In this document: piece by piece, positions 13,498-43,627 of the stretch
Position numbering within the stretch: position 1 is the first letter of the stretch
How the letters are laid out: each line of letters begins with the position of its first letter
Assembly (NCBI GenBank): GCA_976226885.1
Contig: OZ320321.1
Coordinates: 55,800,001-55,864,000 of the forward strand
Source: Iphione sp. A-MEVVRFRX5
Taxonomy: Eukaryota
Direction of reading: 5' to 3'
Length of the DNA: 64,000 nucleotides
Made by a program: the position numbers and the translations under genes
The notes under the pieces: model-generated
Database searches by the model: none
The model's input: only the letters and a program-made list of their open reading frames with translations
What the model was told of the DNA's origin: nothing

Positions 13498-13853
13498 GAA
13501 GATTCTTGGTTACATGATGTGAGTCGCTGTTTTACTCTAAAGTTATGGCTTACCGGCAGAAGATTCTTCATTACATGATGTTAGCCGCTGTATTACTGTA
13601 AAGTTATGGCTTACCGGCAGAAGATTCTTCGTTACATGATGTTAGCTGCTGTATTACTGTAAAGTTATGGCTTACTGGCAGAAGATTCTTTGTTACATGA
13701 TGTGAATCGCTGTTTTACTCTAAAGTTATGGCTTACCAACTGAAGATTCGTCATTACATGATGTGAATCGCTGTAATACTGTAAAGTTATGGCTTATCAG
13801 CAGAAGATTCTTGGTTACATGATGTAAATTGCTGTATTTCTGTAAAGTTATGG
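13498..13853. repeat. Minisatellite, 61-bp unit x ~6 (gaagattctt..ttacatgatgt...cgctgt.ttact.taaagttatggcttac..gca)
   Basis: Units start at 13498, 13559, 13620, 13681, 13742 and 13803 (exact 61-bp period), with scattered substitutions and a truncated last unit. Confidence 0.95.
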
Positions 13854-21279: not shown

Positions 21280-21735
21280 TTAACCCTTCGGGAAAATGGT
21301 ACAAAGGGCTATAATAATGATGACCAGATAGGCACAGAAGAAAAGCCTATCCAGGACGAGAGCGACGATTCGCCACTCCATCATCACCTTGGCGATGGCG
21401 TCCTTCTCTTGTAGACGGGCCATAAAGGATCGCAGGGCCCTGCGGATCTCCTTCACCTCGCTCTCCATGGCCACGTCGTGGATAGGAGAGCGGTCGGGGG
21501 TCTGGTAACGGGCCTGTACAGGGCTGTCCGCCCGGTGGTTGTTCGCCGACGGAGGCTCCCACTTGTTATAGGGGAGAATGGGGGATTTGATCTTGAGCCG
21601 CTGCTTCTCCTTGCCGGACTTTCGCCGAGAGTCTATGCTAATGGTGTGGTGCTCCATCCGACGCTCCCCCTCCTTGCTAAACTTGGGAAAGTCACCACGC
21701 ATGAACACAAAGCGCGCCAAACCATCTATAAAAAC
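21280..21735 (-). CDS. nAChR module A, terminal exon (M3-M4 cytoplasmic loop, MA helix, M4; VFIDGLARFVFM...EWRIVALVLDRLFFCAYLVIIIIALCTIFPKG*)
   Basis: Acceptor ttcag, phase 0; 456 nt to TAA. Contains the EWRxVAxVxDR M4-preceding motif of nAChRs. Confidence 0.93.
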   Translation of the reverse strand, partial: VFIDGLARFVFMRGDFPKFSKEGERRMEHHTISIDSRRKSGKEKQRLKIKSPILPYNKWEPPSANNHRADSPVQARYQTPDRSPIHDVAMESEVKEIRRALRSFMARLQEKDAIAKVMMEWRIVALVLDRLFFCAYLVIIIIALCTIFPKG

Positions 21736-21983
21736 CTGAAATATTCACAAAAACACAGGCCAGTTTTAGACTTCAGCCACATGAACATGTTATATTTGAA
21801 AGTCACGATCCGAGAATTCGAAATTTGTGTATTTCCCTCGGATTACACTGGCCAAAGCAAAGTTCCCACCCCACCGCCAAGAAAGTTGATTGAAAACTGA
21901 TAGTTGAAAAGAAACACTTTGCTTTAAATAACCGACTTCGATTCTAGGTCCACCACAACGAACTGCAGACTGGTGATGCGTAC

Positions 21984-22102
21984 CTTTTTCATACACATTG
22001 GTACTCGTGTGCGCTTGTCCCCCCGGAAGTAGAGATTGATAACGACGACCGACAGGAAGGTGGATAGAGTTATGATAACCATGTTGAGCCCAAAGTAGGC
22101 AC
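21984..22102 (-). CDS. nAChR module A, M3 exon (GAYFGLNMVIITLSTFLSVVVINLYFRGDKRTRVPMCMKK)
   Basis: tttgtag acceptor and AAG|gtacgc donor; 119 nt, the same length and phases as the module B M3 exon. Confidence 0.93.
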
Positions 22103-23042
22103 CTACAAATTGATGGAAAGTCAGTTTGCATAGGGGCAGGATCTGAGCACTTATTATAAAACATCAGTCCAGCACATAAAAGCACAAGTTAGTTCCTGTT
22201 TAATCTTAAGATTACACATGTACTGTCTTTGTAAAATTTGGCCTTGCTGTCCCATAACAAAGTCACCTGAAATTAGACACATTCCCTAGGTAAAATCACG
22301 GCCGAGTTGTGAGAGGATCGAACAAGACGTCACAGCTGGCTGGTTCCACAGCTTAACACATCTACACCACCGACTAACGACGGAGCATACTTAAATAGAA
22401 GTACACATTATGTTCCACCAAGATTACGATATGATATATCTCAATGTTCGGACACTCTATGTTTGTTTTAGTTCTTCCACACACACGGGATGACAGAATG
22501 GCTTCATTTCTTGAGAGGATCTAATCGGCAGCATGCTAAAGGGAGGAGTCGTCTTTACAAGTCTACCTGCGTAGGGTGTATATCAGGTAACAATTATGTT
22601 AAACTGTTAAAAGAAATCTCATGAAATGCCCTTAAAATGGCAAGATACTGAGTAAGTCCCCGTGAGCCTCTCAGACTTCTCGTTAGGTGAAGTCGGTCAA
22701 CTCTGAGCACTGTGCATATTTCTCGTGTGAGGGTATCTTTTTCGGTCAAATACATGTACATATTTTTTTTAAAGAACATGCAGAAACACTCCATCGACAA
22801 TTTATATAGGTTTAAACAGTGCAATCATCCTGCATAAAAATCAAAGGTGATCCAAATAACAACGCGGTTTCCTCACATGGTTGATATTCCTGAAACTGAC
22901 AGTAATACCCTAGAAGAATTAAGCATTTCCGCTTCCGCCAGACAATAGCAGAAGCGTACGGTTTTAAAGATCCAATACCATTATGCGACTAACGTTTTTT
23001 TCCGTTTTAAACTGGCAGAAGCCCATTGAGAGTATAACTCAC

Positions 23043-23129
23043 CTATTAGAGGCACAGAAGATGATGCCGGTGGGGTTGAGTCTGATAAGATTCGCAGCAA
23101 CAGAAAGAATGCTACGAAAATGTTCATAC
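23043..23129 (-). CDS. nAChR module A, M2 pore exon (GMNIFVAFFLLLRILSDSTPPASSSVPLIG)
   Basis: tatgcag acceptor and TAG|gtgagt donor; 87 nt, phase 1/1. Confidence 0.93.
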
Positions 23130-23512
23130 CTGCATAAAAGTCATAACGAAGAAGAGACTCCGAGTTAAGGGGCGTCCGCATGTCCGTAACAGTCCATGCT
23201 ATAGGGTGATTGCAGCAACCGAGATTCATCATAGCCATAACATTTGAAATAGGGTTAACTGTTATGTACTATATAGTGACTTATTACATTTTATTGAAAC
23301 AGGATACAGAAGAACATGGAAATGTTTATGTTTACGTTAAAGAGAGGCGCTGATACTTATTGACAGTGACTATATGCTGGGATAAGTTCAGTGAAATGTC
23401 ATAGGATAATTCACTGTAAAATATTCAGATGCAGCATTCATATTAAACATTGTACTCTTGCTCTTGTCGTTAGAGCTATATAATCAAATGACTGTACACT
23501 GGAATTGCTCAC

Positions 23513-23967
23513 CTAGGATCATCTTAGCGGACGACTCTGGAGGTAGCCAGAATATGACTAGCGTGATGGAGGAAAGAAGAACACAGGGCAAGATGAGGAT
23601 ATAGCTGTAGAAGGCCCCCATCCTCTTGACCTTCATTGTGAAGGTTAGGTCAATATAGGGCTCATCACAACAGGGGTACCTCTTGACGTTCCTGACAGCT
23701 GGGTGTTCAACCAACACCCACTCGTTGCTCTCGATATAATCATTGACGTCCACCTGATCCAGGCCATCATAAAAGTTCAGATCCACTTTGTATCCATCGT
23801 AAGTCCAAGATCCGAATTTCATGTGGCACGTTTGCTCATCAAAAGGAAAGTGTGTGATGTCGATGCTACAGGTACTCTTGTAGATGCCCATAGGGATCCA
23901 GAGAACCTGGCCGTCTTTGTCGACCACAGCTAGTGCTTCGCGCTTCTCGGTTAAACGAATGTCAGCA
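23513..23967 (-). CDS. nAChR module A, Cys-loop/loop B/loop C/M1 exon (CSIDITHFPFDEQTC; FGSWTYDG; YPCCDEPY; ...LPPESSAKMILG)
   Basis: gtacag acceptor and TAG|gtgagc donor; 455 nt, identical in size to the module B exon. Vicinal CC in loop C marks an alpha-type subunit. Confidence 0.95.
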
Positions 23968-24563
23968 CTGTACACAAGAAAGGCATATAGTGACTTGTCA
24001 CAGTTTTCAGAACAGCCACTGGACAAAGATGGTACATGTAGATGCAAAGCAAATTCTGGTGTGAAATAGAGAACTAAGGAAATGGCTTCCGTGAGGTAAA
24101 TAAGACACAGGGCCAGGCAACCTGGCATTACAAAATACGACAACTTTCTTTCACTGCCAAATGATTGAATGCTGAAATTGTTTTTTGGAACACAGACGTT
24201 AGAAAATGCGACAATCTCTCTTTGAGTGCCAAGCCGTGAGACATACACTTTTTGCACATGAGATAAATCAGAATAATTGATCCTATCGCTGGTAGGTCTG
24301 CAGCTAGGAAAGATACACGGATCTGCGTAGCAATCAGGACATCCTATCTTTCCTTGAGGGAAACCATACATTTAACGTCACAGAGAAGTTTCTGTCAACA
24401 TTTGGTGAAGATATAATCAAGAACACTTTTAGGGCGGACAGTGCATAAGCCTCCCAGCGATAGGTAAAATATATTCTACCACAGCCTTCTAAGTACAAGT
24501 ATCAATATCTGAGACTTCGTTATTGATACCTTATACATGTAGTTGCGTTCTCATCGTACTTAC

Positions 24564-24673
24564 TAGTTATAGAGAACTATATCTGGCGTCCAAATATGAT
24601 CGGACGGCACCCGTACATGATCCACTCCTCCAAAGTCTTCAGGATTCCAACGAAGGAGGATGTCGTTCCATGT
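24564..24673 (-). CDS. nAChR module A, first exon of the module ([37 protein letters not shown])
   Basis: ctttcttag acceptor (phase 0) and CTA|gtaagt donor; 110 nt; loop A WxPDIVLYN motif. Not in the ORF track and was found by reading the - strand. Confidence 0.93.
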
Positions 24674-27600
24674 CTAAGAAAGAGAGATACACATGTGTTG
24701 CTGACATATCCTTTCCATTCAGCCTGGATAGGAATGAGGAGAAAATCACGCCGAACATAGATGTGGAATGCTGTATTTGTCCGATATACTTTGTGGCGCA
24801 TGTGTAGATCAATTAACGCTAATTCCAAATTACGTCCTATTTAATGGAATATGGAACTGAATTATATAATGGGCTGTAATGTACTTTTCTCCAGAAACAC
24901 ACCATTGCCCTTTACAGGCTTCTGCGAGGATTGAATTGAAATTCGCACGAAGTCTAGTTTCGTGTTACTTTCATTGAAAATTGCACTGCGCCTAATGTGG
25001 AAAGACTTAACACTAATCAAGTCCCATGTAAGTTGACTTAAAATGAATGATACAGGCATAGTTACATATACAAGCGCGGAGCCAGTCCTCCTTGTCTCGC
25101 CAAATGGCATCATTAAGAATGTATGTTCGCTCGGCGTGCCCCTGTTGCCTTAGTTAAGGCCAACTTACCCATTACTCGTGTTTCCACACGAGTTGCCAAC
25201 TAGGTTTTCTTATGTCATGCTCTGAATATAGCAGTCGACGAGGAACATTCTGCTGTTACCAATTTCCATCCACCAGTGCAAAGTTAGTCCTTTCAGATCC
25301 AGATGTTTGACAGCAATGGCGTCTGCGTTCTTGTCACCGCTCCAGTACCGCCTCCGGAAGATGATTTCCATGGGGGAAAAACCACCGTTCATAATCTTTC
25401 ATGGCTGATACACTCTCACACACACCACAGCACATTCTCGTTGTACGACACATCACCCTTACGATGGTGAATTTTATTTTCCCATCGTTGATATACTTCA
25501 AGAAAGAAGAAGACACTCAATATTTTACTCAAATGTTTATTCCTCCTTATTGAGCAATGACTTACAGCGGCCTTATTATAAAGGTACATACAAAAGCAGG
25601 GCAACAAGATATAGTTGTACATCAAGGTAGCCTATAACGCCATGATCCTACTCCAACTCTAATCCCATGCCATACACCGAGGAATTATTTTTGTAACCAT
25701 GACAAACACGCTCTTAGCTTTAATTAAGAACAGTATCACGTGTTTTTCAATGCCATTAGCAAAGTGGAGGTTCTTCCCATCGCCGCCCTTCAGTTTCCCT
25801 CCTACACCATTGCCCACGAGTCTGTTCTAGAAAAGACAAGTTTTGGGGGGAACGAACTCGGTGTGAAGTGAGGGGTGCGGGACAGGGTTAACACCGCCCT
25901 GTGTCCTGTCAGGACATTCGAACCTTACCCTAAACTGATGACAAGGGTGGTGCTAACCTGAGGAGACCATTCTGGGGGTGGATATTGTCTCTAAAACAGA
26001 GGGATAGCCTGTCGGTTTGCACGAAACCACAATCAGCGATTTCCATATACTGGGCCAGATGACGCTAAATCATCCAGACAAAGGTAAAGCCTTGATATCA
26101 ATGTAAACACTGCGGCTCCTTTCCGTTCCCAAATAACCCTACCTTTAAAAAAAAGGTTTATTTCACAACAGATCCCCGCTAACCCTAGATAGAAACCTTC
26201 TCATGTTTTATGGTGGAGGGGGCGGGTATGATAAATGTATAGAGGATCAGACTCCTCGCTAAGGTAGGGGGAAACAGAGATTACCACTCTGGAACAAAGC
26301 TATAGGGTAGAATATTGCTAGTACGGCATCTGATATGTATTCACATGGAGGTTAGAGGCGTTGCTAGAATAAAGGTACCGGCCTCAACATTAACAGAATC
26401 AAAGCCATCGTCCCTACAATGATAACGTCAGTTAAAACACTGATACCCCTTACGTCTGTCTATTGAGGAAATGTACAAACACCAGCAAACACTGGGCATT
26501 TATTGGGCCTCAAATAACAGGGTCCTAACTCGTCGATATTTAGGCACAGCTATCGCTGTTTGTACAATATTGGTCTCGTTACTGGGATGAACTGTAAAGG
26601 CAACATATTTACTCCCCTCAGAATCTTCGTCGTTGCAATCTGCCCTAGAGGTCCGGTCCTTAAGATGAAAATTAATAGGTCTTAAGAACAAAGATATAAG
26701 GACAATGACGTTAAATATTACGGGAAGACCTCACGCTGTTATAACTAAGCTAGTTATTTATGTATATTTTAACAAAAACACATGGCGGTTCCCTTCAGAC
26801 ATGGATTTCCACCGGTCATTCATTGGGTTGCTCCCCCCCCCCTTTGCTCGGACAATTTTGACTGAGTGGCTATGAGATGATACAGATTTTGTGCATGAAT
26901 CGCTCCTGGTATATACTGTCAATCTGTCAAGGATAGGAAAGGTGTTAGAACTATCATATACGTGTACTGACAGAACGCCGCCAGCCGGTAATACGGCAGC
27001 TGTTAAATGGCAGGAAGACCAGTTAAACAAAAGTTAGAAGGAATCCCCTGACTTTTATCATAAGACACATTTTCATATTCGTTCGGAAATCTAAATAACG
27101 GGTAATTCATTTTTACACTAGTATTACCTCTTAAGAACATTTTGACAATAACTGGTAAATACTAAACAACAGCAATGCGATACACACGTTCAAATGATGC
27201 TGATAGTAGACAATCAATTTTTCTCTTTCGGTTATCCAAACGTGTCTCGTTTAAGTTTATTACGATGCACTGCTGTCTGATGGTGCATGGTGCACAAGAG
27301 AGATTAGTACATTACATGTATGAAATTTCTATATAATGTTCTTAGGTAACAATCAAAGGCTTACTGACAAAGCAGGAAGCCCATGAAACGGTCTTAATGA
27401 TGAGAGGGACCAACGTTTTAACAATGACCCAAACCATGTGACATCTGTAGTATACACGTACATATACTTCTAATGAGCTATAGGCACATCAGAGGAACAC
27501 GGATGTTATTTTTTTTCGGAGAAAAGCTATTAGAACAAGTGGAAAACGACCCAGATAAATCATTACAAGGAATACAAAAGCGGCCTACATAGCCGATAGT

Positions 27601-28414
27601 TTCCGATCCTGGATAATGTTGTTCTTAATCTACGGTCATTAGGTACATTCTTATATACGAATAATATTCCTTTATGTTAATAACGAAAATTATTTTCTTA
27701 CATAAGTCTTTATCCGTTGAAATTATTCCATCTTAACTAGACTAGTTGCTGGGGTTAATGTAAAATTTTGCCATCATTCATATTCTCTTAATGTTAGGAG
27801 TAAATATCACCATGCTTATGATTATTTTCTTACTTCCCTTATAGGTTAGAATAACGTAAGGATACGATAATGAATAGTAACGTAACTTAGACTACGATAA
27901 TCTCTTTCGTATTTTGTCACTATAGTCTAATTGTTTTTGTGTACTTCTCAGCCATTAAAAGAGGTTACTGCTGGCAACACAATTAAGGATTCGAATAATG
28001 ACTGCGTATAAACGTATGCACAACGTCTATAATATCTTTGCAAGCGTAAATGTATTGCACATTTGTAAACACATTTGTTAGTGAAGGTTTAGTTTCCGAC
28101 GTACAGTTACACTATTTATAGGACTAAACGTTAAGGAAATTTTATGAAAGGCAGATGGTCTGGTTAATGACTAAGGGACAGTACTTGTTGCCAAGGACGA
28201 GCGTTTGTACAGGAAAGTCTTCTTGCAACCCTCATGAGCCTCATGAACAACAACATATAAATATTTTGCCCATCACGAGTACCTCTGGCGGTTATATATA
28301 TATAACCAAATTTCTATTTAGGTCCTTTCTTCTTTATTGAATTTTATAGCTGTCGTCGAAAAATGTACACCAGTAACTTCGGCAGTATAAGGATATAGTT
28401 TTCCTGGCACTCAC

Positions 28415-28851
28415 ATCCAGACTCACACACATGCAGTCATATCCCGGCCATTCTCTGAACTACCCGAATCCCATCCCAACTGGAAAAGAAAGCCGGACCA
28501 GTGGCTGTCTGTTGAGGTAAAATATGTTCTAATTATTATGGTAGGAAGTCCACCACCCAGTCACGTGTCTATGTATATGCCTCGTTATCGCCGAACTATA
28601 TAGCGCCACCAAGCAGGCTGGCAGGATTCCACCTGCAAATCGGCGCCACATCTGCATAAGACGGAAGGGGGATGGATGGGTGGGTGGGTGGGGGGGTACG
28701 TTATGTAACTAATTAATCCCATACCCGAAGATTGTCGCAATCATCTATGGTCATTAATACGTTGCGTATATAAAAGTAATCGGGAAGGGAAAAACGTTCC
28801 TGCGTAAAAGACACCTGATATTTTTTTCGGCCAATAGTTCGCCATGGCAAC
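28415..28851 (-). promoter_or_regulatory. Possible internal promoter and short leader exon upstream of module A
   Basis: CTATATAG at 28596-28603, E-box cacgtg at 28562-28567, CCAAT at 28831, RFX X-box-like GTTCGCCATGGCAAC at 28837-28851. Two GTGAGT donors 12 nt apart (exon ends 28427 and 28415), both phase 0 relative to an ATG at 28432. Motif evidence only. Confidence 0.25.
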
Positions 28852-30542
28852 AATAACAATGAACACTTATTACCCAATACTATGTCTGCTGTAAAGGGGA
28901 AATAACTGAAAATATATATTCTCACCGAGGAGTCTAATTAACATCAAAATGACAAGCGCGAAAGGACTAATCTGGCCACAACATTTCATTGCTCCAAACT
29001 GTGAATGCCTTTACCCGCTCTGTGAACTTGTTTGTCGATATTTCATACAAATGGAAATTGGATATAACATGCATGCATTCGGATTAGTTGAGAGAGAGAA
29101 TCGCCGTATACATAACAGTCCCTATAACAACTAGCCAATATCCCCCCCCCCATTCCCCGTGTTCTTTCTCTCTCGCATGCATTATGATTCATTCAGAGCA
29201 CATCTTTCCATAGAAATATAATGCGCATGGAACTCAAACAATAAGGATCAAACTGAAGCTATAAACTACACACATGGAGCCAGTTAGGATATAATAGGAC
29301 CCTCGGCTACATTAACAGGGTTTTTGTTTTAGCACTACAGCTGATCTTGGCCTCTAACAGATCTCATAACGTGTCTAATTTTTATGGTTTATACACAATG
29401 ATGGCGAGGGTGATCGTGACCATGAAATCTTTCTCTCTGCTTCACGTACTCATATGTACAACCAGACCGGGTTTGTCTGATAAAACTACGACCAGTGAAC
29501 GGTGGCAACCGCCCAAACATTGGTCGAAACCAGACAGACTGTCTAAAAATCGTCTCTCTTGGGGGGGAAATGAAAAGCGGAACGGAAATCCCACTTTGTT
29601 TTGCCACTCTTGTACATGTATGTAATTTACAGCCTAGACAAAATTTACACTTTCAGTCGCATCTGGGAAAACGTATTATCCGAAGTACACGTCGTTCATA
29701 TATACCGTTTAGTTTTTAAGGAGTCGCATCATAACAGTGTGGATTCATATGATCTCAGACTCGGACATATGTTGGTGACACACTTGGTGAGCCCCTCGGG
29801 CTTAGGCCAACGTGTTAACAGTATGTGGTGACTGTGCTCCGCCCATCTCGGTTCGGGAGTCCATTTATATTCCTTATAATAGACCCGGGGACATTGTTTC
29901 CCATAGACCTCGTCGTCTACGCCCCTCCTACCACTTCTCTATCAGATTGTGGCTGTGGTAGTATGCAGTGCAGACGAAGCTGGTCGACCCGAGAGTCATT
30001 TGTCGACCAGTATCAGAGGTCACTCACTGAAGAGGCAGATACCCGGAGTCACCGTGAGTACGCATTGAGTTAATCTTTAGGCTCAAGTTTGGGCTTTTCT
30101 GTCGTCTTAATCGTGCCGGAGCACGCATTTGTAAACCAAGAGCGCAGAGAATGCATTCAGGACGCTTGTTATCAGTTTCATTGTTACGATTTCAAGCGGT
30201 TTGTCTGACCCTACCTGATCGGATGGCTTGCCAAATCACTTGATTTTTTTTCCCTTTTGCCATCGCCTTCCGCAAATTAAAGTGTTTGAAAACGGGTTTC
30301 AGGCCTATGATATTGTGAAACACAAGCCAGCTCTTTTATCACAGACATCATCGTGGACGATGGTGGCGCCTCCATGTTTCTTGTCTCATATTCAGTAAGG
30401 CAACTAATCATTACCATGGCTAAGTGTCGGGTGGTCGGTGGTTCAGTTGTCTCTTGAATTCTGGTCAGCATTGTTCGTGTTGCGAGAGTGTTTGCTTCTT
30501 GTCCAAGCTTCTAGAATTGGCCATGTGTGGCGGGCGACACCT

Positions 30543-30548
30543 TTTATT
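30543..30548 (-). terminator. Candidate poly(A) signal (AATAAA) for nAChR module B
   Basis: AATAAA on the - strand ~160 nt after the module B TGA. Confidence 0.45.
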
Positions 30549-30706
30549 AGTTTCGAGTGCACAGCATGTCAGCCAGTAGCACCGCATCAAGGAAGGCAGA
30601 TGAAAGAAAATTTACACAAAATGAAAAACAACAAAAAAACCCACCCAGCCCGATGAACCAGTGTTACTGCAATAGCGACTGCCTGCGTCTCTTTTGCATT
30701 TTGTTT

Positions 30707-31153
30707 TCACGCCTTGGGGAAAATGGTTGCCAGGGAAACAATAATCGTACACAGGTACATAAAGAAGAAAAGCCGGTCTAATACTCTCGCGACTATTCTC
30801 CACTCTTTTGCAACTTTCCCTTGAGCGTCCTTGTCATTTAATCGATTTATAAATGTCCGGAGGATCCGTCTGATTTCTTTAATGTCATTTTCTATGGCTT
30901 GATTATGCAAAGGAGAATAGTCCGGTGTGGCGTGGGACCGAGAAGACGGCCCACCGTCCCTGTAGTCAAACACAGGCGCTTGGAATTTGTTGTACGGAAG
31001 GTCTTTACACTTGATCTTTGCTTTGCGATCTTTGCTGTGTTTACTGTGAGCCCCGTCTAGGCTCAAGGTGTGATGTTCTTGCCGGGAGACCTCGTTGTCG
31101 GTTACGACCTCACTGCGCATGCACAGGATGCGAGCGAGGCCATCTACCATCAC
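30707..31153 (-). CDS. nAChR module B, terminal exon (VMVDGLARILCM...EWRIVARVLDRLFFFMYLCTIIVSLATIFPKA*)
   Basis: atttccag acceptor, phase 0; 447 nt to TGA; M4 motif; homologous to 21280-21735. Confidence 0.95.
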   Translation of the reverse strand: MMVDGLARILCMRSEVVTDNEVSRQEHHTLSLDGAHSKHSKDRKAKIKCKDLPYNKFQAPVFDYRDGGPSSRSHATPDYSPLHNQAIENDIKEIRRILRTFINRLNDKDAQGKVAKEWRIVARVLDRLFFFMYLCTIIVSLATIFPKA

Positions 31154-31551
31154 CTGGAAATACGAAACCAAATGACATAAGTGTCTCAGTGTACAAACAC
31201 GTATATATATAAAATAAATATGCGTGCGCACGTGTACACATGTGCGACCGGAAGCGCATTCGTGCAAGCGCGTACGTGTACACGTAGACCTACTGACCTT
31301 GACGGATCTGACCCCAAAGGCATACATTTCCGTGGAACTCAAATCCGTGTTCAATGTCAGATTCTTGTGCAAGATTTTAGTCAGTTAAGTGTATCACCAA
31401 ATGAATCTGGAGAGAGATACCTCGCAATACACACCACTAGTTGGAACGTTGCAATTAGAGTTCTTCATGTCTGGTTACTTTAAACAGCCAATATAAATAC
31501 TTGTACGCACGTATGTAATTGTAAAATGTGTACATGTAGCAATAAACTTAC

Positions 31552-31670
31552 CCGTTTGAGCCACTTCGGCACTCGGCTACGTTTGTCACCTCTAAAGTAG
31601 AGGTTTATCACGATGACGGATAAGAACGTCGAGAGTGTAATAAGAATCATATTTAAACAAAAGTATGCCC
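31552..31670 (-). CDS. nAChR module B, M3 exon (GAYFCLNMILITLSTFLSVIVINLYFRGDKRSRVPKWLKR)
   Basis: ttcatttcag acceptor and CGG|gtaagt donor; 119 nt. Confidence 0.94.
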
Positions 31671-33151
31671 CTGAAATGAAGAGAAGAGCACGTCAGGGGA
31701 TTACACAGAAAGCATCATATCACATCTAAATCAAGGCATATAGTTCTACGACTTGCATTCTGTGTAAACTTGACATAGCTGCATATGATTTCAGTAATTA
31801 CATATTCACTTATTTCTTTTGGGTACACTTATTGTCGCTCATGCTCTGATATACTTCAGGGCTTTTCAAACGCTAAGGGTGAAGATATATTTACGAATGA
31901 ACTTAAGAAATTTGGGAGCACGCATTTAAAGCTACATGAATGTATATAAGTCGTCACCTCCTACCAGACAAAAAGAAAGGCAAATTCAAAGTAGGCGAGG
32001 GGGTACCGGGAATGGCTTGTCTTTGGTATACTTTACGTAAAAAACGGAGGACACCAAGCACAGACATGGAACTTGGTATGGAAATGGGAGAAAAATGATC
32101 GAAACATTTCGCCTGCAATATTTGGTCCTAATGGAAGCAATGTGAACCAATCGAAACGGGGGTCACAGAAACATATCCATATATATATATGTATCACAAA
32201 TTAGGTGATCTAATATGAAATATAAACCTGTGCACCGATGTCCCCACTTTCACCCTTTGCTATGAAATACTTGCCGGTGGACGCCTCCAAGCAACCTTGT
32301 CGTGTCAGGAACACAGTCGAGGAAGCTACCTGGATGTTACTACAGTGCTGACCGTTCGTACCATTACCATTTAAAGGACACTTTCCGACTAATTTGGTCC
32401 GAAAATAGACCTGTTGTTTTGCACAAAATAGCCACAATTTTTTTTCATGTCACCTGTTATACTGCCTCAGACGTGGCGTGTGCATCCTGTTGCATTATTA
32501 GGTTTTCCTCCTATTCGAAGTTTCTGTTGGCTCGTCTCAATTTTGATGATATAAATTTTGTCCGAACCCGCCGTCTTTCCAAGAAGCTGACTCAGCCACT
32601 CAAGTCTGCTGCACTTATGGAGTTTCAGAATTTGTATGCTCTCTTTACATTCACATATCCGTATGCCGCATACAGAATAGACCTGGGTTATCCATGGATC
32701 TCCCCAGGTATAATTCGCAATGCACACAAGTGAAAAATATCACTTCTAAATTATATCGTGGGAAATGACACCATAATTTCCAATTGGTATCTGATGTTTT
32801 GAAATGTATGCTATAAAAGTGTGATAAGAAATAGTGACACCCCATGCGCTGAGCAGTGTGGCAATTGCTACCTTAGGTGGTTAGGACTATCCCTTCAGCA
32901 AACAAATATACCCTAACGGAGGGATAGGGGAAGCACACGGGATAGTATTTCAGTGTGCATAGAAGTGAATATGTTATCATCTAGTTTCAGAAAAAAGTAT
33001 ATATTTCCCAGTAATGGTTTCCAAATAATGTCATCATGCGTGCGCTTCTGCTTGACTGAGAAAAGGGTCATCGTTAAGATTTAAATGAAACGTTCCAACG
33101 GAAAGGGCAAAAATAATGAAGTTATTATGGACGTCGTAAACCCGTTCCTAC

Positions 33152-33238
33152 CTATGAGCGGCACGGAAGAGGCGGCGGGTGGCGTAGAGTCCGCAAGTAG
33201 TAGGAGCAACAAGAAAAATGCCACAAATATGTTCATAC
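33152..33238 (-). CDS. nAChR module B, M2 pore exon variant b (GMNIFVAFFLLLLLLADSTPPAASSVPLIG)
   Basis: ctctttacacccag acceptor and TAG|gtagga donor; 87 nt, phase 1/1, no stops. Absent from the ORF track. Confidence 0.9.
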
Positions 33239-33467
33239 CTGGGTGTAAAGAGGAGACAACAGGAGAGTGGCGTCAATGAGCACGGTCAAAAAACCAGGCA
33301 TGAAGTAATAGTTAACACAATGAAAGACCTAACAAATGATAAGTAACCAACTAGGGGGGCGACGAACGGTGCACACCCACAGGGCGCTAAAGGTCTCCAC
33401 GGCATGAGGACGAAAAAAAAAAAAGACAGTACAACCCTGCACGCCGCCTACAGCAGCCTGTGTACAC

Positions 33468-33490
33468 GCGGCGGCGGCGGCGGCGGCGGC
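33468..33490. repeat. (GGC)n/(GCC)n trinucleotide run just downstream of the M2a donor
   Basis: gcggcggcggcggcggcggcggc is directly visible. Confidence 0.85.
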
Positions 33491-33523
33491 ACGAGAGGAG
33501 TGGATGAAACCGGGTTGGCCTAC

Positions 33524-33610
33524 CTATGAGAGGTATTGATGACGCGGCCGGAGGTGTAGAATCCGCTAGCAGAAGTAGCAAGACGAAGAAGGCCACAAAT
33601 ATGTTCATAC
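33524..33610 (-). CDS. nAChR module B, M2 pore exon variant a (GMNIFVAFFVLLLLLADSTPPAASSIPLIG)
   Basis: ctctaccctgtgcag acceptor and TAG|gtaggc donor; 87 nt, phase 1/1. Confidence 0.9.
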
Positions 33611-34298
33611 CTGCACAGGGTAGAGGGAGGTAACCAATATGAGGTTGGATCGCAAAATGTTTTTGTTTTGGTTTGGTTTTCGCTTTTCTGTTCTCCTTTC
33701 TCGTTTATTTATTTTTTTTTCAATGAAAAAATGTCTTCAAAGGGGATTTTTTTCACTATTTGTCCCACCACAGGCCCAATTTGGAACATTAATCATAATG
33801 AATATGATTTCGATGTGTAGCAAATACATTCGACGTGTATTGATTAAATTCAGAATATACTAATTATCTTACGGCGAAGGCCTGGACCGAGAACGTGCTT
33901 CTGTTAACACTGATCATTCTCTATTAGTCTGGAAAATGCCATGCTAGTTGCACAAGCATATTGCTATTACTGGATACTGATTGTAAGATTTTATATAAAA
34001 GGTTAATATCTTTTTTGGGTAACTATCAAAATTCAAGGAATTTTTTTCCGCATGGACTTTTGACCGAATGTTTGAAAATTGGAACATAAATTACATGCAA
34101 GGGGGAATGTATATGGACCTAATGGATTGCTTGCTTGATTGGGCTGTACGTATCCAAATTTTTGTCGTGAAAATTTTGTCTATATGAGAAACATAAAAAT
34201 AGTTTCAAACAGTGTAACGTAGGCCCCTAATGTCTTACGTGGATGAGAGAAAAGGTCTCAGAGAAAGGAATGGTATGGCCCTCAGGAGTATAAAGCAG

Positions 34299-34364
34299 GT
34301 CGACATGGGCGTATCACATTGATCTGAACCGGAACCAGATCAAGAAATGTGTCGTCATGCCGAC
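34299..34364 (-). other. 66-nt imperfect RNA hairpin (~23 bp, 9-nt loop) in the intron before the twin M2 exons; pre-miRNA-sized
   Basis: GUCGGCAUG/CAUGUCGAC (9 bp incl. one G-U), CG/CG, CACAU/AUGUG and UGAUCUG/CAGAUCA stems around the loop GUUCCGGUU. Confidence 0.5.
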
Positions 34365-35476
34365 AGCAAACGAAGAAAATAAGTGGCTTGTGAACATATT
34401 ACAATCGAACAACGGCACTACAACACATACCGAAAGGAACGTTTGAGAGACCTCTCGTCGGGTCAATTATCTACTCCAAACAAAGCCCCCGGTTTGAAAT
34501 GCTTTGTGCCCCAGTACATATGCACAAGGTGATTTTGACTCAAATGAAAAAAAATCCCGTGAATATGAAGCAACTCTAGCAGCCGTTGGGTTCAAGTTTT
34601 TCTTCATGCTGGGATAGTGTTGATAATTCTGATATGGAGTGCAGGGGCAGAACCTGGGGTTTACGTACTGCATTTAAGCCGAGGACTCGTTTGCTTGCTA
34701 GGCACAAACTGTGAAGTGTAAGACCGTCGTGCCCTCTCTAGATTGATTCTATGAACACCTCTTCATTTACCGTCCATCAAATTGTTTTATATGGTATAAA
34801 TTCATCTGGCTTTATATTCAGTCGAAATGAATTGAAAGGAAAACTCTATACTACTATTACTTACATAAGACCAACCCGTTCAACCAACGGAGTAGCGTAA
34901 TAACTGAATTCTAAACTACGAATTTTGGTTCATTTCAGGATTTCAGAAGTATTATATCAATACACATATTAATGAAATGATCCGAAATTTACCTATCATT
35001 CATCGTCTTTCTACAAGTTACATAACAGATGTTTTAAGTATCAACTTACGGGCGAAAATGAATCAACCACAGTTGAACTAACTTCAGGGGCAGATTTCCA
35101 GGAATATTATTTTGTAAATAGACCCTTTACTTATTCTTGCAAATTCACTGATGCAATTATGTATCCTGTTTTTGCTTTCTTCGGATAAACAAATTTGTAA
35201 TTATAACTGTTAACATCGATTCCCAGTTGTTTAGTTTCTGAGATAATTTGTTCGCAGTTGATTCATCCTAGGCAGTCGTTTCATCCAAAATCGTAGTTAT
35301 ATCAATTCACAGGCGATATATTCTGATGTTCCTTTGCCTATATGTCAGTTTTCAAGTGGCCAGCCAAGCTAAGTTAAGCTTTACCATGAGAAATACTTAA
35401 ATGTGCGATTTTGGATTGAAAGTCGTGCCCAACGCTCGCCAAGAATGTATACCGTAATAGAAGACACACCACTTAC

Positions 35477-35931
35477 CTAGAATCATTTTGGCCGGTGACT
35501 CTGGTGGGAGCCAGAAGACTACCAGAGTCAATGAGGATAACAGCACACATGGCAATATTAGGATGTAGTTGTAGAAGGCAGCAATACGCTTTAGCTGCAG
35601 GGTGAAAGTCAAATCTGGATATGGCTCCTCACAGCACGGATAATACTTGACGTTCTTCTTGGCCGGATGGCCTAGAAGAGCCCATTCGTTGCTCTCGATG
35701 TAGTCACTGACGTCAACCTGTTCAAGGCCGTCGTAGAAGTCGATGTCGAGCTTAAAGCCATCGTAGGTCCACGAGCCGAACTTGAGGTGACATACTTGTT
35801 CATCGAAGGGGAAGTGGGTGATGTCAATGGAGCAAGTTGATTTGAAGATGGCCATAGGAATCCACAATACAGTGCCATCACTTGACACTACAGCCATAGC
35901 CTCCCGCTGCTCCTTCAGGCGAGTATCGGCA
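35477..35931 (-). CDS. nAChR module B, Cys-loop/loop B/loop C/M1 exon (CSIDITHFPFDEQVC; FGSWTYDG; YYPCCEEPY; ...LPPESPAKMILG)
   Basis: Acceptor aaaacag preceded by a (TC)n tract and TAG|gtaagt donor; 455 nt; alpha-type vicinal cysteines. Confidence 0.96.
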
Positions 35932-35940
35932 CTGTTTTTT

Positions 35941-35944
35941 AGAG

Positions 35945-35989
<45 letters not shown>
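35941..35989. repeat. (GA)n microsatellite, serving as the polypyrimidine tract of the module B large-exon acceptor on the - strand
   Basis: About 24 GA units ending ~8 nt from the acceptor AG. Confidence 0.95.
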
Positions 35990-35992
<3 letters not shown>

Positions 35993-36640
35993 TCCAAGTT
36001 GAGTACAGGAATTACAATCGAATGTAACCGACAAGATTATGAACTAGAGTACGTTATACAGCAAGGCTAATTAGCTGAGTATGATTCTTACGACGAGAGT
36101 CGCATTACTGTGAAATCATTCATATCAGCAGGAAAATCACTTCAAGAAATGAGCGAAATTTCGCGTGTTGAATTTTTGAAAGTCGCTTCAAAACTTTTCA
36201 AAGTAATATGACTCCACCGTATCTGTTAACCCAAGATAAATAGTTTTTTTTTCGATGAAGAAACAAGCAACTTTCCTGCATCACCGGTAAAGCGATACTG
36301 AATTACATGTATCTCACATTATTGCATATTGAACTGAAGAAGTATACCGAGTCTGCATGCATTAACACTCCAGATCATTCCACATTACTGTATTTCAAGA
36401 CAAAAATTAATCTGCTTAAATTTCCACGCGAGTGATATGAATTATTCCGCTTCATTGAATTTTGCAATGAAGAAACGTTAAGTCCACACCTATTAACTGT
36501 TCCAGGATTACACATAACACGTATCATTCCACTATACTTTGGTAGATATATTCTCACTCTATATTTTGGATCATGAAGACAATATGTTAAGGTGGCTTAG
36601 TTCAGATTCGTCAACAGAAAGAGCATTTCTCTAAACGTAC

Positions 36641-36750
36641 TAGTTATATAGAACAATGTCCGGTGTCCATATTTTCGTTGCAGGCACGCGAACGTGATCG
36701 ACCCCGCCGAAGTCCTCAGGATTCCAACGTAGTAGAATATCATTCCACAA
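36641..36750 (-). CDS. nAChR module B, first exon of the module ([37 protein letters not shown])
   Basis: cttttattcag acceptor (phase 0) and CTA|gtacgt donor; 110 nt; loop A motif. Not in the ORF track. Confidence 0.94.
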
Positions 36751-39700
36751 CTGAATAAAAGAAAAAGGCCAACATCATTTTACGAGCCTTAAAAAGTGAG
36801 AGGTGTTTAATTATTCATGAACAGTAGGAGCTCTCCCTAGGCAGTCACCCTTAGTTACAGCTAATAAGTGATCAAAGAGAGAGGTGACCACTGGTGAGAG
36901 TTTTATTCATAGAAGATAGTCACCTTTCCATGGCTATTTGACCATAATAGGAGGTTATCACTTGGAGATGGGTAACCAACAGGAGAGATGCTACTGTACT
37001 GATAAATAATTATCAAAACAATGGCCATGTCTGTATAATTAAAAGAGTAATGCGTGCACATGCTAGCACACAGAGGATATAAATGTATTAGTACTAAAGA
37101 AAAAAATGTTAGAGGTTATTCTTTTTGCACGTCCTCACCCTTACCATTCAAGAACATTCTCTCATTCTCTCTCACTCACTCATTGTATATATTTATATCA
37201 CATGTATAGATGGTAGTAACCGATATGCAAAGTATCCTGTGCCTCTCACGTGGGTGGACCCATGTTAGTTGTGCGAAATGATAAACACTGATGCAGGAGA
37301 TATGTCTAACTTTTATTGTTCTCGCTCTCTTGTGTGGCGGCTTTCCCCTGCCCGTTCCCCCAAATCTACCCTTATTCTCTCTCTCTTACTCTCTTATACG
37401 GGTGTCCATGTTATCTACGACATCGCTTTCATTTGAGAATTTCAATGAAAGCTTCGCCCCTAGGCATGTTTCGTTGTTTTCCGAGGTGCGCGCGGAATCT
37501 CGCAAGCCACACGGGCAAAGCACCGGTTCCGTTTGTCCGGGTGACGTACACTGCTGCCCGGGCTGGACATCGGCGAGTGAAATTTTGACACATACGGAAA
37601 TTCCAAAATCACCGCTTCATCGGCCCTCGTTATGAACCTGCGGAGAGATTACAATGCATATATCAGATACCAAACGCGATGTTAGCAATGTGATGGACAC
37701 AGAATGGGAGAGAAAAATCTAATAATTTCTCGTTTACCGACTTTAACCGATTTTGCTTTCAAAAATGGGGACTCATATCTCAGTGAGGCAACTCGGTGGG
37801 GCACCTAAAATAAATCATAATCCTAGTCTGACAGATGTTACTTTGATAAGTGAAATAAGTGCTTTAATGAGAGACATCATCATACGAAGAGCGTTTGGCG
37901 TCTGATATATTCAAAGATCTTTTTCTTTTTGAAATTAAACGATGGCCAGGATATCCTTACTGCTTTCCAGAACTTACAATATGTAGGTATACGTGTTCAT
38001 TCAGAGCGAGCCATTCACCTATCATTAATTGTTCGGAAGAAATTAGCATCCAGCAGCCCGTGAGCTATTTGAGGAAAGTTGACACTTTAAGAGAGAAGAG
38101 AGAGAATTAAATGGAAAAGTGCTACATTTCACCTTACGATAAGTCTTCCTCACAAAGCAATCCATTCAAGAAAAAAAAATTGAGGAAAATTCTCCATAAA
38201 ATTTCAGGAGAGTAGGAAACCTTGCAATTGAATCGGATGAGCCACCATCGTTTGAAAGCACAATGCAGTAATGGAATCAACAGGAAACCACCAGCACCTC
38301 ACAAGAATTAGTATAATTCATGCAGGCTTAAAGCATTAGGCAGTAGCACCCATATCAAACCGACTACCCCGGACAGCCCCATCGTGCAAAGAATAGACTT
38401 AAGTAGTGAGTGTTATGAATATGATAGTTTGTAGGCAGAACGAGAATTTAGTGAAGCATAATACTATGTGATACCGCCCCATGCTTACTGAGAGTAATAA
38501 GAGTAGGAGTTGTACTCACCTTCCTTGGCTCTTTGATCTTCTGTGAAGCCACTTTCAAATTTTCTCACTGTGAAGAAATGGCTTGCTACCTCCAACCATC
38601 CACTTCTTGCGGAACGTGAAAATACTTAGCTGAGAGCTTCCAGGAGAAAGTTTTGTTTTCGTTAATTTCGGCGATACAGTATATTGATACGTTTGTGCTT
38701 AGGGGACATCCCCATTCTCTCTGTCCGAATACACACAGTTACATTAATCTAATTTAAGCAACTTAATTAATAAGTACATGTAACTCAGTTGGTTGTCATG
38801 GTTTCGTTCGTCTAACCGTCGACATTTGTACTGAAAAGAAGCGCCACTCCCCAATTTAGAATTTGCTGATGAGCTAGACTAGAAGGAAGCACTGGAAGGA
38901 GCGGGTCAGGCCCCCCCCCAATTAGATTCAGTGGTGGAGTCGGCTTTGCACTTAGTCGTCTCTATTTATTGGCATTGCGACCGTAATGGCATTATTTAAT
39001 AGTGCAATTCCAGCGGTTCGACACAAAAGGGGTTCTGGAATGTAATATTGCCGCAGTCAAATTCATTCTGCAGGAACATTTTGAAAGAGTTTGAAATAGA
39101 GGCTCCCCTCGAACACACCCAGTGAAAGGAAAAGTCAAATCGGATGGAATTTCCACTCATTCCCACCTTTATTGGTGGAGATGGAAGACTTTGTGAGGGC
39201 AGCACACGAAGAAACCGAAATGCGGCTCCCATGCCAGATTCTCGTGACAAAACAAAAGCCTTCTGCAAGATCCATTACGGTAGCCTGCATTATCAATTTT
39301 GAATACGTATTTCTTTTGATTGCACACTGTTTGCCATAACAGTTGGAAAGGATACCTGAAGTCTGCATTCACACAGCGTCATTTCGAATGCGATACACTT
39401 AAACACGCCATCGCTTACTTGTTTCAGAGAATATTTCAGAAATACACGTTTATTCATTTTTGTTTAAAGAAAGGACTCTCCCATTGGGTGAATATTCCCT
39501 TGTCCCTCAGGTCATTTATTTAAATTCGCGAAAGTGATGCCCAAGGTCCCTGACAGAAGGACAGGGTACTTTCAGGTTGCCCTTGGCGAGAAGGACACCC
39601 CTCATATCGTTCAAGTGCCATATTTACCATGGTCATAAAACAAAGTCCCAACTCCCATGTGCATAATAGCTCCTTTTCTCCCACTTCTCGCCCCCTTTTT

Positions 39701-41344
39701 GGTGATTCATGTTCATGTCAGCTATAGTGGCTCTCTCGCTGAAGTAACGGTACTTTGGGCCGGCGACATTGTCCTTTACAGATTCCGAGGGCAGCCATTA
39801 TGTCTCTGTACTCCTCTGATATTCTGTGTGTTCCATCGACTGATGTCGAATGCTTTTAGCCCTCGTTCCTCTTCTAAAAGGACGGCTGCCGTTCCCGCTA
39901 ATTCCCGAAATGCAGTGTATTAAAAAACTTCATAAATTCGCCTCGACTCCGCTGGATTGGTTACCTTTCTGGGGAATTGGCGGTACAGAGTATATATTTT
40001 CTGGGGGGGATTGACGTACAAAATAATTAAACTGAATAATTGAAACACGCGTACGAGTAATTAGATCGAGGATGTTGACATTCTTTTTGACAGACCTGAA
40101 GAATAAAAAAAAAGATTAAAGGGACTTTCTACGAGATTATTTTTGGGTGGCGAAGTTAAGCTGTCTTTTAAAGAGTACGTCGTCCCCCCCGGCGGATTGA
40201 CGTAGTTGTCTGTGGCATTGCTGTAATCTGATGCTGATAGTGGTGAGAATCCTATGCAACGCACGTCGAGCCTTTGCCTCCGCTCTTCAACCGAAACGTC
40301 ACTCACAACGCTTGACCATTTGTCACTTATGCTCGTAGCAGGCCTGTAGTGACATGGGGGCTGTCTGGTAAGGGGCCACCGGGTCAAGCAGTCAGCCCCT
40401 GTCGGGCTCTGCAGTGGCAAGAGGTCTTCTGGGACAATCAGAGGCGAGGCTTGGAGAAGTAACATAGGAGCGTTGATGTTAGACAAATGTTGAAACATAT
40501 TTCTGTATTCAGCGGCCTGGCATTTCGTGCTCGAGATGAGGCCAGGACGCCGAAACTGAACTAGACCGCTATGCTTGCTTTGAATAATAAACGGAGAAAA
40601 AATACGCCGCCGCGAAGAAGAAAAATGGAGATGTTTGCTTGACAGTACGTAACATAAATCACTGAAACATCAAGATAGTGGTGAATCTGATTTACCCATA
40701 GATGTTTTATGCACCAGTGGTTTTTATATTCATGTTGGTTATGTATTGCAAATGCCTGTAGAAAACACAAAACATCGCATGTTACGAACGAACAGCGTCT
40801 GTGGTGGAGAAATACATTAGCTGTCGATTTCGTCAATGCGCCACCACCCACAGCGATAAAAAAAGACATTATATCTGAATTATCTAACATCACATCCATC
40901 TTACTCGGTGAAATACATCACGCGTTCAAATATGTATCATATATTTTTGCTTTGAAATACACTGTAGGATACTCGCTGTGATCGACCATAGGGGGGATCT
41001 TTGCATCTATCATCAGTCACATGGTCCCCATTGACCAATAAGCCTTTGAGGCTTGTGTTATGCCACCCCGACCGAGTGGCAGTCGAAGCCAAACAAACAG
41101 CAGCAGGGCATTTGCCCAGACGGTAGCTCAACGCGGCTTACTTTGAGCCACTCGTAATCTCTAACGAACACAGAGACACTAGCAAACATTCCTGCGATGA
41201 GCATCACGTTTGCTCAGACCTTGAATGTATTTGGATACAGGAGTAAATTCTGTCATGAACGCCATACTTTTCAAGCTATCCTTGGACATTCACTCTCGCA
41301 CTCGCTACTCGCACTATGGGAGTCACACTGTTGTCGATACTTAC

Positions 41345-41538
41345 ATATCTGCTCCAGACATTCGTTGTTAGGACTTGATTCTTCTCATCCAAATCAAGAA
41401 TCTGAATGAGGGCGAGGCCGTAGCTGACGCGGACCGTCTCAGAAGTGTTGTAGACCGGACGGCCGACAATCCCTACTCTCTCGTAATTCTCGAGCAAATG
41501 CTTGATCAACCGCTTTTCATCGGACATTGCTATTGTCT
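41345..41538 (-). CDS. nAChR N-terminal exon, the only copy found (TIAMSDEKRLIKHLLENYERVGIVGRPVYNTSETVRVSYGLALIQILDLDEKNQVLTTNVWSRY)
   Basis: ttttttcaccatttcag acceptor (phase 1) and TAT|gtaagt donor (phase 0); 194 nt. Contains the RPV, LIQI..DEKNQVLTTNVW (loop D) motifs. In frame with both 36750 and 24673. Confidence 0.95.
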
Positions 41539-43627
41539 CTGAAATGGTGAAAAAACCCACATATATTACAGTCTGGAGTACAATTTTAACGGAGTGACAA
41601 ATATGATTGTAGATCACATTGGTACGTTATAGGAACATGCCTACCTACTATAATTCTCTTCCATCATAACACATTGCATTTCTCTGATAGAGAAGGAGCA
41701 AATATAAGGTTGCGTTAGATTATTGCCATTGGAGTTTATACAGAAGGGTTGGACCATTTAAGAAGGACAGAGTAAAATACCAATGGCACATTTTGTCATA
41801 CTTGGCAGAGTAGTATTTCTTTACAATAGGATGAAATCCGGCCAATAATTTATCATAAGCACACACTCTAAGCACCACTATATACAATGTACCTCAGACC
41901 CTTTCAACTCAATGTATGTATATCTTTTGGTAATTGTTTGAGCAGGGTCAACATATAAGGCCGAACCTGGGTTGAAAGACTAGGGTTATTGACAAATGAA
42001 GGATAAGATGGGTGATCAAAAGAATGGATTTGAAAGGGGAAGAGAAGGTCGCGCGAGATCCATCTATAACACAGGCCCGGGGGTGGAGTGGGGCAGATAA
42101 GGGCTCAAAAAGGATACGGAGTGCAGGAGAAAGACAGATGCCAGGAACATTGCCGATGTCTGGCTTGCCAGGCTTTCATGTGTCCTCCTCATAGAAGACT
42201 GGCGCGTACGATGCGATTATAATGGACGGTTGCCATGTCACCAGCAGGCGCGAGCTGCTCCCAGAGCAGCTCATGAGGAGGGGAGATGAAAGCCATACAC
42301 AATTCCCGACATATCGTAAGAGAATGGCACCGGGCTGTGACTTTTCGTCATCACTCTCCCTACCCCTCTCATTCAGCACTAGAGGCTTGATGTTACAGTC
42401 TGGTCATTGTACCCACAGCATCATATCCTCCAAGTGTTGACCGGGTGTTCCCTGATCGCTACAAACGCAGTTAGCTCCCTATACGTGTTGTCGACGGTTG
42501 GGATGGGGTGGGGAGGGAGAGCAAGATTGGGCACAAGATACTTTGAAGTTGGCACATACATTCAACGTAATGAAGCGTATATGAATAGAAACAGATCGGT
42601 TCGCGCACTCTCTCTGTCATATTTTTGCAATTGAATTGAAACTTTCAGATGACGGAAAACATCTGGTTGCTCTTCTATTTAATTTACCTCTCTTAATTTA
42701 GACCCGAATTGGATTTCCGTCACTACATAGCTTGCTATTAGAAAGGTTTCTATATCTTTACTTGTGATACTGGTGCAACAATTAAGCAGCACTATTCTGT
42801 GTCATTGCTAACCTGCTCACTGCCTATATCACCTCCACCGTGCTTAAATGCAAATAATGTAGACCAATTTGAAACGTTCCCCAGTCCCTACATCATTACC
42901 CTCGAGCCGGTTAAATTTTGAGTTACATGTCAAGTGATTCCCGAAATACAAAATTCCGCACAATTAAGATATGCGATAGACAATATTCTCAGACTTATGT
43001 TGTAAGCTCAGAGAAGGCAAGCAAAATTCAAGGAGAAAATGCAAGATTTACTTATGGGTCAGAGACAACGATCTTGCACCCGATCTCGAAGGTAATATGC
43101 CGAAATATGCAGTCGGGATGGGTGATTCCACTCCCCCGGAGATTTGAATCAAACCGTTTTACCGAGGAAGGTAAACGATATTGTGTTTTAAGGAAAAATA
43201 AAATTCTTGATCCACCTACCTATGAGTGTCAGTAATGTAGCAGAACACAACAGTAACTCCAAAACATGGCATTCCATTCGCGCGCTACCTAAGCTCCATG
43301 AGGAAAACTATCATATGTTGACCAGGCGATAGTTGTTGGTTGTGTATGTACACACACACAACTTCTGAGTGCGCGACTCCCCTCCCCTCAATGAACCTGG
43401 AATTTAGGCGACCTCCGAGCGGCGAGGTGGTGGGCCGATGGGCAATAGGCACACACACAGGGCGAAGCCAGGCCCTGCATTCAGGAAGAAGCAGGGGTTG
43501 GTGGGGATTGCTTAGGAATGGATTGCAAGCAATAAAGCCGAGGAGACGAGCGCGCCTGCCTTGGGCTATATAAGTTATAGGGTGAGACAGGCGCTTGTGT
43601 AGGTGGCACTAGTGGAGGTTCTCTTAC

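Follow-up and report, generated by a model that had tools for sequence, protein, structure and literature searches.

A single N-terminal exon and two complete 3' gene bodies at an annelid nicotinic-type receptor locus, probably joined by alternative splicing

In the annelid Iphione sp. A-MEVVRFRX5, a locus of the nicotinic acetylcholine receptor (nAChR) type is found on contig OZ320321.1, within a 64-kb stretch of DNA that was analyzed as a whole and is referred to here as the window. All of the receptor coding sequence lies on the minus strand, where one N-terminal exon (41345-41538) is followed by a first 3' gene body, B (36750-30707), and then by a second one, A (24673-21280), with the individual exons listed in Table 1. 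The N-terminal exon, translated in phase 1, reads TIAMSDEKRLIKHLLENYERVGIVGRPVYNTSETVRVSYGLALIQILDLDEKNQVLTTNVWSRY and encodes the alpha1 helix, beta1-beta2, and loop D, corresponding to positions 1-54 of 216 in the Pfam ligand-binding domain (LBD) family Neur_chan_LBD. Joining this exon to either body restores the canonical VW-x4-W spacing, VW-SRY(L/T)-WND, and AG...GT is present at every internal exon boundary of both bodies. An earlier account of this DNA, made from its letters alone (the sequence-only reading), had described the exon coordinates, sizes, phases, AG...GT sites, and separate stops of two such modules, all of which were reproduced exactly. Its claim that the phase-0 donor of the shared exon fits both modules was borne out as well, the resulting frames being open up to one terminal stop and encoding 469 aa with B and 472 aa with A, while the candidate AATAAA that it assigned to each module was located 159 nt past the stop of B, at about 30543-30548, and 642 nt past that of A. 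The locus therefore carries a feature of genes with alternative 3' modules, namely two 3' exon sets that are both phase-compatible with a common donor and have their own stops.

Table 1. Features of the receptor locus, as window positions; a slash marks a splice boundary
Feature	Positions	Strand	Length	Remarks
Candidate signal-peptide exon (coding part)	43220..43277	-		MECHVLELLLCSATLLTLI plus one base; donor ATAG/gtaggt; heuristic scan
N-terminal (shared) exon	41345..41538	-	194 nt	acceptor ttcag/AG, phase 1 in; donor TAT/gtaagt, phase 0 out
Body B exon 1	36641..36750	-	110 nt	phase-0 acceptor
Body B exon 2	35477..35931	-	455 nt	loops E, B, F, C, Cys-loop, YPCC, M1, ESPAKM (Pro-Ala motif)
Body B M2 exon, version a	33524..33610	-	87 nt
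Body B M2 exon, version b	33152..33238	-	87 nt	2 residues unlike version a
Body B M3 exon	31552..31670	-	119 nt
Body B terminal exon	30707..31153	-	447 nt	cytoplasmic loop, M4, stop
B-A gap	24674..30706	-	6.0 kb	no N-terminal exon; no element conserved with the equivalent annelid gaps
Body A exon 1	24564..24673	-	110 nt	acceptor ctctctttcttag/, same phase-0 position as in B
Body A exon 2	23513..23967	-	455 nt	ESSAKM where B has ESPAKM
Body A M2 exon, single	23043..23129	-	87 nt	FFLLLRIL
Body A M3 exon	21984..22102	-	119 nt
Body A terminal exon	21280..21735	-	456 nt	includes stop; A-type signature SPILPYNKWEPP

Domain matches and motifs identify both bodies as predicted alpha-like nicotinic Cys-loop subunits. 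Matches to the Pfam families Neur_chan_LBD and Neur_chan_memb were obtained for the shared exon, both 455-nt exons, and the terminal exon of B, and the terminal exon of A scores 27.8 bits, slightly below the cutoff of 28.1. The Cys-loop (C-x13-C), CSIDITHFPFDEQ(V/T)C, and the vicinal cysteines YPCC(E/D)EPY are found in both bodies, and the best match in the PDB is alpha7. The nearest named proteins are annelid (Owenia, Dimorphilus, Paralvinella, and Lamellibrachia), followed by nemertean, brachiopod, and molluscan ones, including the Biomphalaria 'nicotinic acetylcholine receptor subunit type B', to whose orthology group both bodies belong. The replacement of the intermediate-ring Glu before M2 by Pro-Ala is a mark of acetylcholine (ACh)-gated chloride channels (PMC4055736). 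At this position B has ESPAKM, and thus Pro-Ala, as do the anion-selective receptors LnAChR type B of Lymnaea and SmACC of schistosomes, whereas A has ESSAKM, in which the Ala is present, the Glu is absent, and the Pro is replaced by Ser. The locus is thereby suggested to encode an alpha7-like subunit of the Pro-Ala type that is probably anion-selective, although the Ser-Ala of the window copy makes the ion selectivity of A uncertain. In addition to Ser for Pro at -2', the pore of A has Arg at 16' of M2 (counting the Lys of AKM as 0'), and these two residues suggest an A-specific pore. The diagnostic features of A, namely FFLLLRIL in M2, SP.L.YNKWE in the loop, and ESSAKM, recur in the public gene models P0037 of Lamellibrachia satsuma and P0043 of Paralvinella palmiformis, and the FFLLLRIL motif is found in Lamellibrachia, Paralvinella, and Intoshia models. 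Position 16' of the A-type sequences is occupied by Arg in Lamellibrachia, Paralvinella, and Intoshia, by Lys in P0121 and the Helobdella protein P0122, and by Ser in the annelid contig L003.

Body B contains a tandem pair of M2 exons that was absent from the sequence-only reading, with FFVLLLLL...SSIPLIG in one version and FFLLLLLL...SSVPLIG in the other. The same pair is present in Lamellibrachia (4281-4370 and 5071-5160 of the fetched locus L001) and in the annelid contigs L003 and L004, and the Dimorphilus model P0032 has both copies read in, so that the two 87-nt exons of B are probably a conserved mutually exclusive pair.

The number of N-terminal exons is central to the interpretation of this locus. 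A profile hidden Markov model built from 22 N-terminal segments was run with the --max option on every stop-to-stop segment in six frames, and the exon at 41345-41538 scored 118 bits as the sole strong match in the window, with nothing above 10 bits elsewhere in the 64 kb. When the exon itself or eight full-length homologues served as tblastn queries, 41345-41538 was likewise the only region returned, in agreement with the earlier claim that only one N-terminal exon exists and that none lies in 24674-30706. Two weak tblastn matches, at 37206-37379 (E=1) and 5535-5657 (E=0.16), were seen neither with the full-length homologues nor with the profile and were set aside as chance. No second copy was found by tblastn or the profile in the fetched annelid loci either, where true copies score 115-118 bits. 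The shared exon is 84-87% identical between Iphione and other annelids, compared with 66-67% for the extracellular part of A, and a diverged second copy would therefore have been detected. A single common 5' coding exon, another feature of genes with alternative 3' modules, is thus present, with one profile match in the window and one in the combined annelid sequence L003 and L010 described below. For the exon preceding it, a homology search found no signal-peptide exon, and a heuristic scan of 41539-64000 for an ATG, a hydrophobic core, and a phase-1 donor yielded a candidate at 43220-43277, 1.7 kb upstream of the N-terminal exon, whose phase 1 matches the AG opening the next exon and which would give ...TLIETIAMSDEK.

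The first exon of A has the characteristics of an internal exon. In all four species compared, it is preceded by a polypyrimidine tract and an AG acceptor at the identical phase-0 position, homologous to that of B. In the window, the acceptor AG lies within an in-frame TAG, and neither a Met nor a start codon is present in the exon, which indicates an internal coding exon requiring an upstream phase-0 donor. The first Met in A falls inside a beta strand and A has no signal peptide, so that A cannot encode a receptor alone. The only other phase-0 donor, among those of B, follows the M3 exon, and judging from the exon lengths, splicing from it to A would produce a nonsensical topology. The donor at 41345 is accordingly the only one in the window predicted to give a canonical subunit.

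Comparison of the two bodies points to an old duplication. Their large exons are 77% identical in amino acids and 69% in nucleotides, and the figure of about 78% in the sequence-only reading therefore holds as protein identity and fails as DNA identity. Across exons 1-4, the nonsynonymous divergence (dN) is 0.15 and synonymous sites are saturated, and the terminal exons share 48% of their amino acids. An assembly gap or a haplotype duplicate was considered and rejected, since the window contains no N letters and the bodies differ at 31% of the large-exon nucleotides. In a maximum-likelihood tree of bodies, the A members (the window, Paralvinella, Lamellibrachia, and L003 A bodies together with the protein P0121) group as a single clade (support 100/97) that falls within the annelid B-type sequences (98/96), from which it follows that the duplication is old and preceded the split of these annelids. 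The frame and splice sites of A have stayed intact since the duplication, the frame being complete in the window, Lamellibrachia, and Paralvinella, and intact in L003 as far as fetched. Taken together, the A clade, the saturated synonymous sites with a dN of 0.15, and the intact frames indicate that A is old and under selection, and the proposal that selection maintains both modules was upheld as regards A.

Whether related genomes keep this arrangement was a question raised by the sequence-only reading, and at least three further annelid genomes do. In Lamellibrachia satsuma (L001, JAHXPS010006220.1:853990-881759), Paralvinella palmiformis (L002, JAODUP010000006.1:736939-764070), and an annelid contig from the ENA (L003), tblastn and the profile reveal B followed by A with no N-terminal exon between them, the A body lying 3-6 kb downstream of a B body described with two M2 exons. 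In L001, the B-type body with its two M2 exons ends at 7311 and the A-type body starts at 10470; the corresponding positions are 2870 and 9073 in L002, and 15119 and 18094 in L003. The fetched sequence of L001 and L002 starts downstream of the upstream end of the locus. For L003, 8 kb further upstream on the same ENA contig (L010) contain a single N-terminal exon, 14.2 kb before B exon 1, and L003 and L010 together have one N-terminal exon across about 28 kb, providing a second species with the full order of one N-terminal exon, B, and A. In a fifth genome (L007), the 4.8 kb upstream of an A body are without an N-terminal exon. Pairwise blastn and tblastx of the B-A gaps of five genomes revealed no conserved coding or non-coding element other than simple repeats. 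In another annelid contig from the ENA (L004/L011), the B body groups weakly (86/89) with P0008 of Owenia and no A body was found within 11.7 kb downstream of B, so that a B-only state exists too. Downstream of Paralvinella A, by about 8 kb, a further B-like receptor gene is arranged tail-to-tail (L002 24975-26194, minus strand), and no counterpart of it was found in the window.

Both public A-type models, P0037 and P0043, are without an N-terminal exon, as would be expected if annotators found none nearby. These models begin with short unconserved exons or a retained intron (L001 10001-10030) and are missing the N-terminal quarter of the LBD, and both probably need re-annotation. The closest relative is P0062, located on an ENA contig of 56 kb, with 92% identity to the large exon of A. 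Nine further entries, P0145-P0153, are single genomic open reading frames (ORFs) of 390-530 aa with A-type signatures (KIKSPVL.YNKWE and C-terminal FPW...) and hugely expanded, low-complexity cytoplasmic loops, and A-type terminal exons seem to be inflated in some lineages.

The 520-aa protein P0121, whose 1563-nt ORF runs without interruption on a 24-kb ENA contig, is a full-length A-type protein. Its junction from '...NVWSRY' to 'TWND...' is the one predicted here for the shared exon and A, which shows that the N-terminal part is present in A-type proteins and is joined as predicted. Retroposed intronless nAChR genes are common in lophotrochozoans (PMC6896357), which makes it plausible that P0121 arose as a retrocopy of an A-type mRNA. 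Searches for transcript-derived A-type proteins, using the Lamellibrachia A body as query, a profile of the A C-terminus against 1.8 billion representatives, and a full-length Lineus query, returned only genomic exon ORFs and gene models; P0279, at first a promising entry, turned out to be a cephalopod-like orthologue.

On the basis of this anatomy, it is likely that splicing connects the shared 5' exons to body B in some transcripts and to body A in others. In an annelid ancestor, a tandem duplication would have copied the last five exons, encoding about 85% of the protein, and left out the 5' ones. The common 5' exons, comprising a signal-peptide exon and 41345-41538, would then belong to one transcription unit, from which splicing to the acceptor at 36750 would give a transcript ending at B's own stop and poly(A) site, and transcription past that site would allow splicing over a 16.7-kb intron to the acceptor of A at 24673. 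The two predicted subunits would have in common the signal peptide, the alpha1 helix, beta1-beta2, and loop D, and would differ in the other binding loops, the pore, and the cytoplasmic loop. The sequence-only reading had proposed one promoter yielding two subunits; its anatomical part stood, as did, through the other genomes, the absence of an N-terminal exon belonging to A, and the splice from 41345 to 24673, like the choice between splicing to B and reading through to A, is what we infer from them.

Several observations weigh against this interpretation. The signal-peptide exon is only a candidate, and no orthologous exon was recognized in L010 or in the locus L005. A second N-terminal exon may lie outside the window, at a distance of over 22 kb upstream of 41538. 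No transcript-derived A-type sequence was found among 5.8 and 1.8 billion proteins, and the N-terminal part of P0121 is not evidence of sharing with a B body in its source species. As for docking and selector pairing, no long-range inverted repeat was found beyond simple AG/CT runs, and the best duplex between 41195-41344 and the gap has -85.5 kcal/mol, against a shuffled mean of -83.9 and a minimum of -92.9, in a crude test that short pairings could escape.

Among the alternative explanations, A could be a separate gene whose own promoter, signal, and N-terminal exons lie outside the examined region, for example with a first intron spanning B. The view upstream of the N-terminal exon extends over 22 kb in the window and 3.1 kb in L010, and very long introns do exist at the locus, as illustrated by L010, where the N-terminal exon and B exon 1 are 14.2 kb apart, both of which leave room for such a gene. 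Nevertheless, it would need a rearrangement besides the duplication, kept in four lineages, whereas a body-only tandem duplication accounts for the layout directly, and the score of true copies makes it hard to reconcile with the single N-terminal exon recovered in the window and fetched loci; we regard it as rather unlikely. A different route to a complete A subunit would be a promoter in the gap, with the A transcript trans-spliced to the common 5' exons, in the manner of Drosophila mod(mdg4) and lola, in which two pre-mRNAs are joined by trans-splicing. Every sequence observation behind the sharing of the exon is matched equally by this mechanism, which would also dispense with reading through the poly(A) signal 159 nt past the stop of B, but the gap offers neither promoter evidence nor a conserved element and cis-splicing is simpler. 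Coding trans-splicing is rare and, to our knowledge, none has been described in annelids, and we give this mechanism little credence.

Finally, A could be a 5'-truncated partial duplicate, expressed without the N-terminal quarter of the LBD or surviving as a silent relic. Partial duplication of a nicotinic body is known from the chimera of CHRNA7 exons 5-10 and FAM7A, which is among the PDB matches, and the public Lamellibrachia model lacks a signal peptide and has a short first exon that looks invented. On the other hand, the first in-frame Met of A lies in the middle of a beta strand with no signal peptide before it; the frame, splice sites, and phase-0 acceptor are kept in distant annelids, with saturated synonymous divergence (dS) and low dN; a full-length A-type protein exists in P0121; and no conserved novel 5' exon occurs in the B-A gaps of five genomes. 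A truncated or silent A is consequently very improbable. The human gene CHRFAM7A (dup-alpha7) resembles A in being a duplicate of the 3' body of an alpha7-type gene without the original 5' exons, but it has been relocated and joined to foreign FAM7A exons, is of recent origin, and encodes a truncated subunit. A, by contrast, is an old copy immediately downstream of its parent, whose 5' exons it can use to give a full-length subunit.

Beyond the sharing of 5' exons by B and A, a regulated switch can be envisaged, which we put forward tentatively and consider doubtful at present. One promoter and one signal/loop-D exon would provide, cell by cell, either of two ACh-gated anion-channel subunits. 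Most of the agonist site would be unlike between them, as would the pore (Pro to Ser at -2' and Leu to Arg at 16'), and the poly(A) site of B would compete with the 16.7-kb splice to set the choice, or trans-splicing would set it as in mod(mdg4). Such a switch would have persisted at least from the last common ancestor of the sampled A-bearing annelids onward and would be the first near-whole-subunit exchange by splicing in a nicotinic receptor.

The sequence-only reading had stated that there is no precedent for this among Cys-loop receptors, which is contradicted by nematode avr-14 (PMC3144221). In this glutamate-gated chloride channel (GluCl) gene, also named gbr-2, the ligand-binding domain is the same in AVR-14A and AVR-14B, which diverge in their channel and intracellular parts (PMC3144221). 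As is proposed for the present locus, common 5' exons of a Cys-loop gene are spliced to alternative sets of 3' exons, in an arrangement conserved across a phylum. Nevertheless, avr-14 shares the whole LBD, whereas here only the first quarter would be shared, so that loops A, B, C, E, and F would be swapped too and, with a switch point a quarter of the way into the LBD, most of the agonist site would be exchanged as well. Furthermore, avr-14 is a GluCl gene with cDNA-backed isoforms, in contrast to the nicotinic-type ACh receptor described here, which is known from sequence alone.

Smaller exchanges are found in insects, GluCl exon 3 being an example of a mutually exclusive exon (PMC13512814). 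Exons 3 and 8 of insect nAChR alpha6, those of RDL, and GluCl exon 3 are tandem exons of equal size and the same phase, like the 87-nt M2 pair of B, but they swap one internal exon in a common transcript, whereas the unit exchanged here would be a block of five exons complete with a stop and poly(A) signal. The architecture itself has parallels in unrelated families. The Drosophila genes lola, mod(mdg4), and PGRP-LC each combine one promoter and common N-terminal exons with alternative 3' terminal modules having their own stops, although those modules usually comprise one or two exons, as opposed to a near-complete gene body. In the literature on lophotrochozoan nAChRs, including that on LnAChR type B and SmACC, no report of a two-body locus was found.

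If the predicted splice takes place, one annelid gene would produce two nicotinic-type subunits sharing only their first ~90 residues, an exchange far larger than the single-exon swaps of insects and one that cuts within the LBD, not after it as in avr-14. Partial tandem duplication might in that case yield a new subunit at once, through borrowed parental 5' exons, and the properties of inhibitory cholinergic transmission would have a testable link to alternative polyadenylation or splicing. Without their N-termini, the A-type models of Lamellibrachia and Paralvinella would pass for partial genes or pseudogenes, and such loci would be miscounted in censuses of the expanded lophotrochozoan nAChR family.

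In the neighborhood of the receptor locus, an uninterrupted 645-aa ORF at 10079-12016 on the plus strand of the window matches MFS_1_like (E 4.9e-44) and represents a major facilitator superfamily transporter gene, which is convergent with the receptor locus and lies about 9 kb beyond the stop of A. The interval that separates this gene from the receptor locus includes a 61-nt unit repeated six times in tandem (13488-13853, 87% matches).

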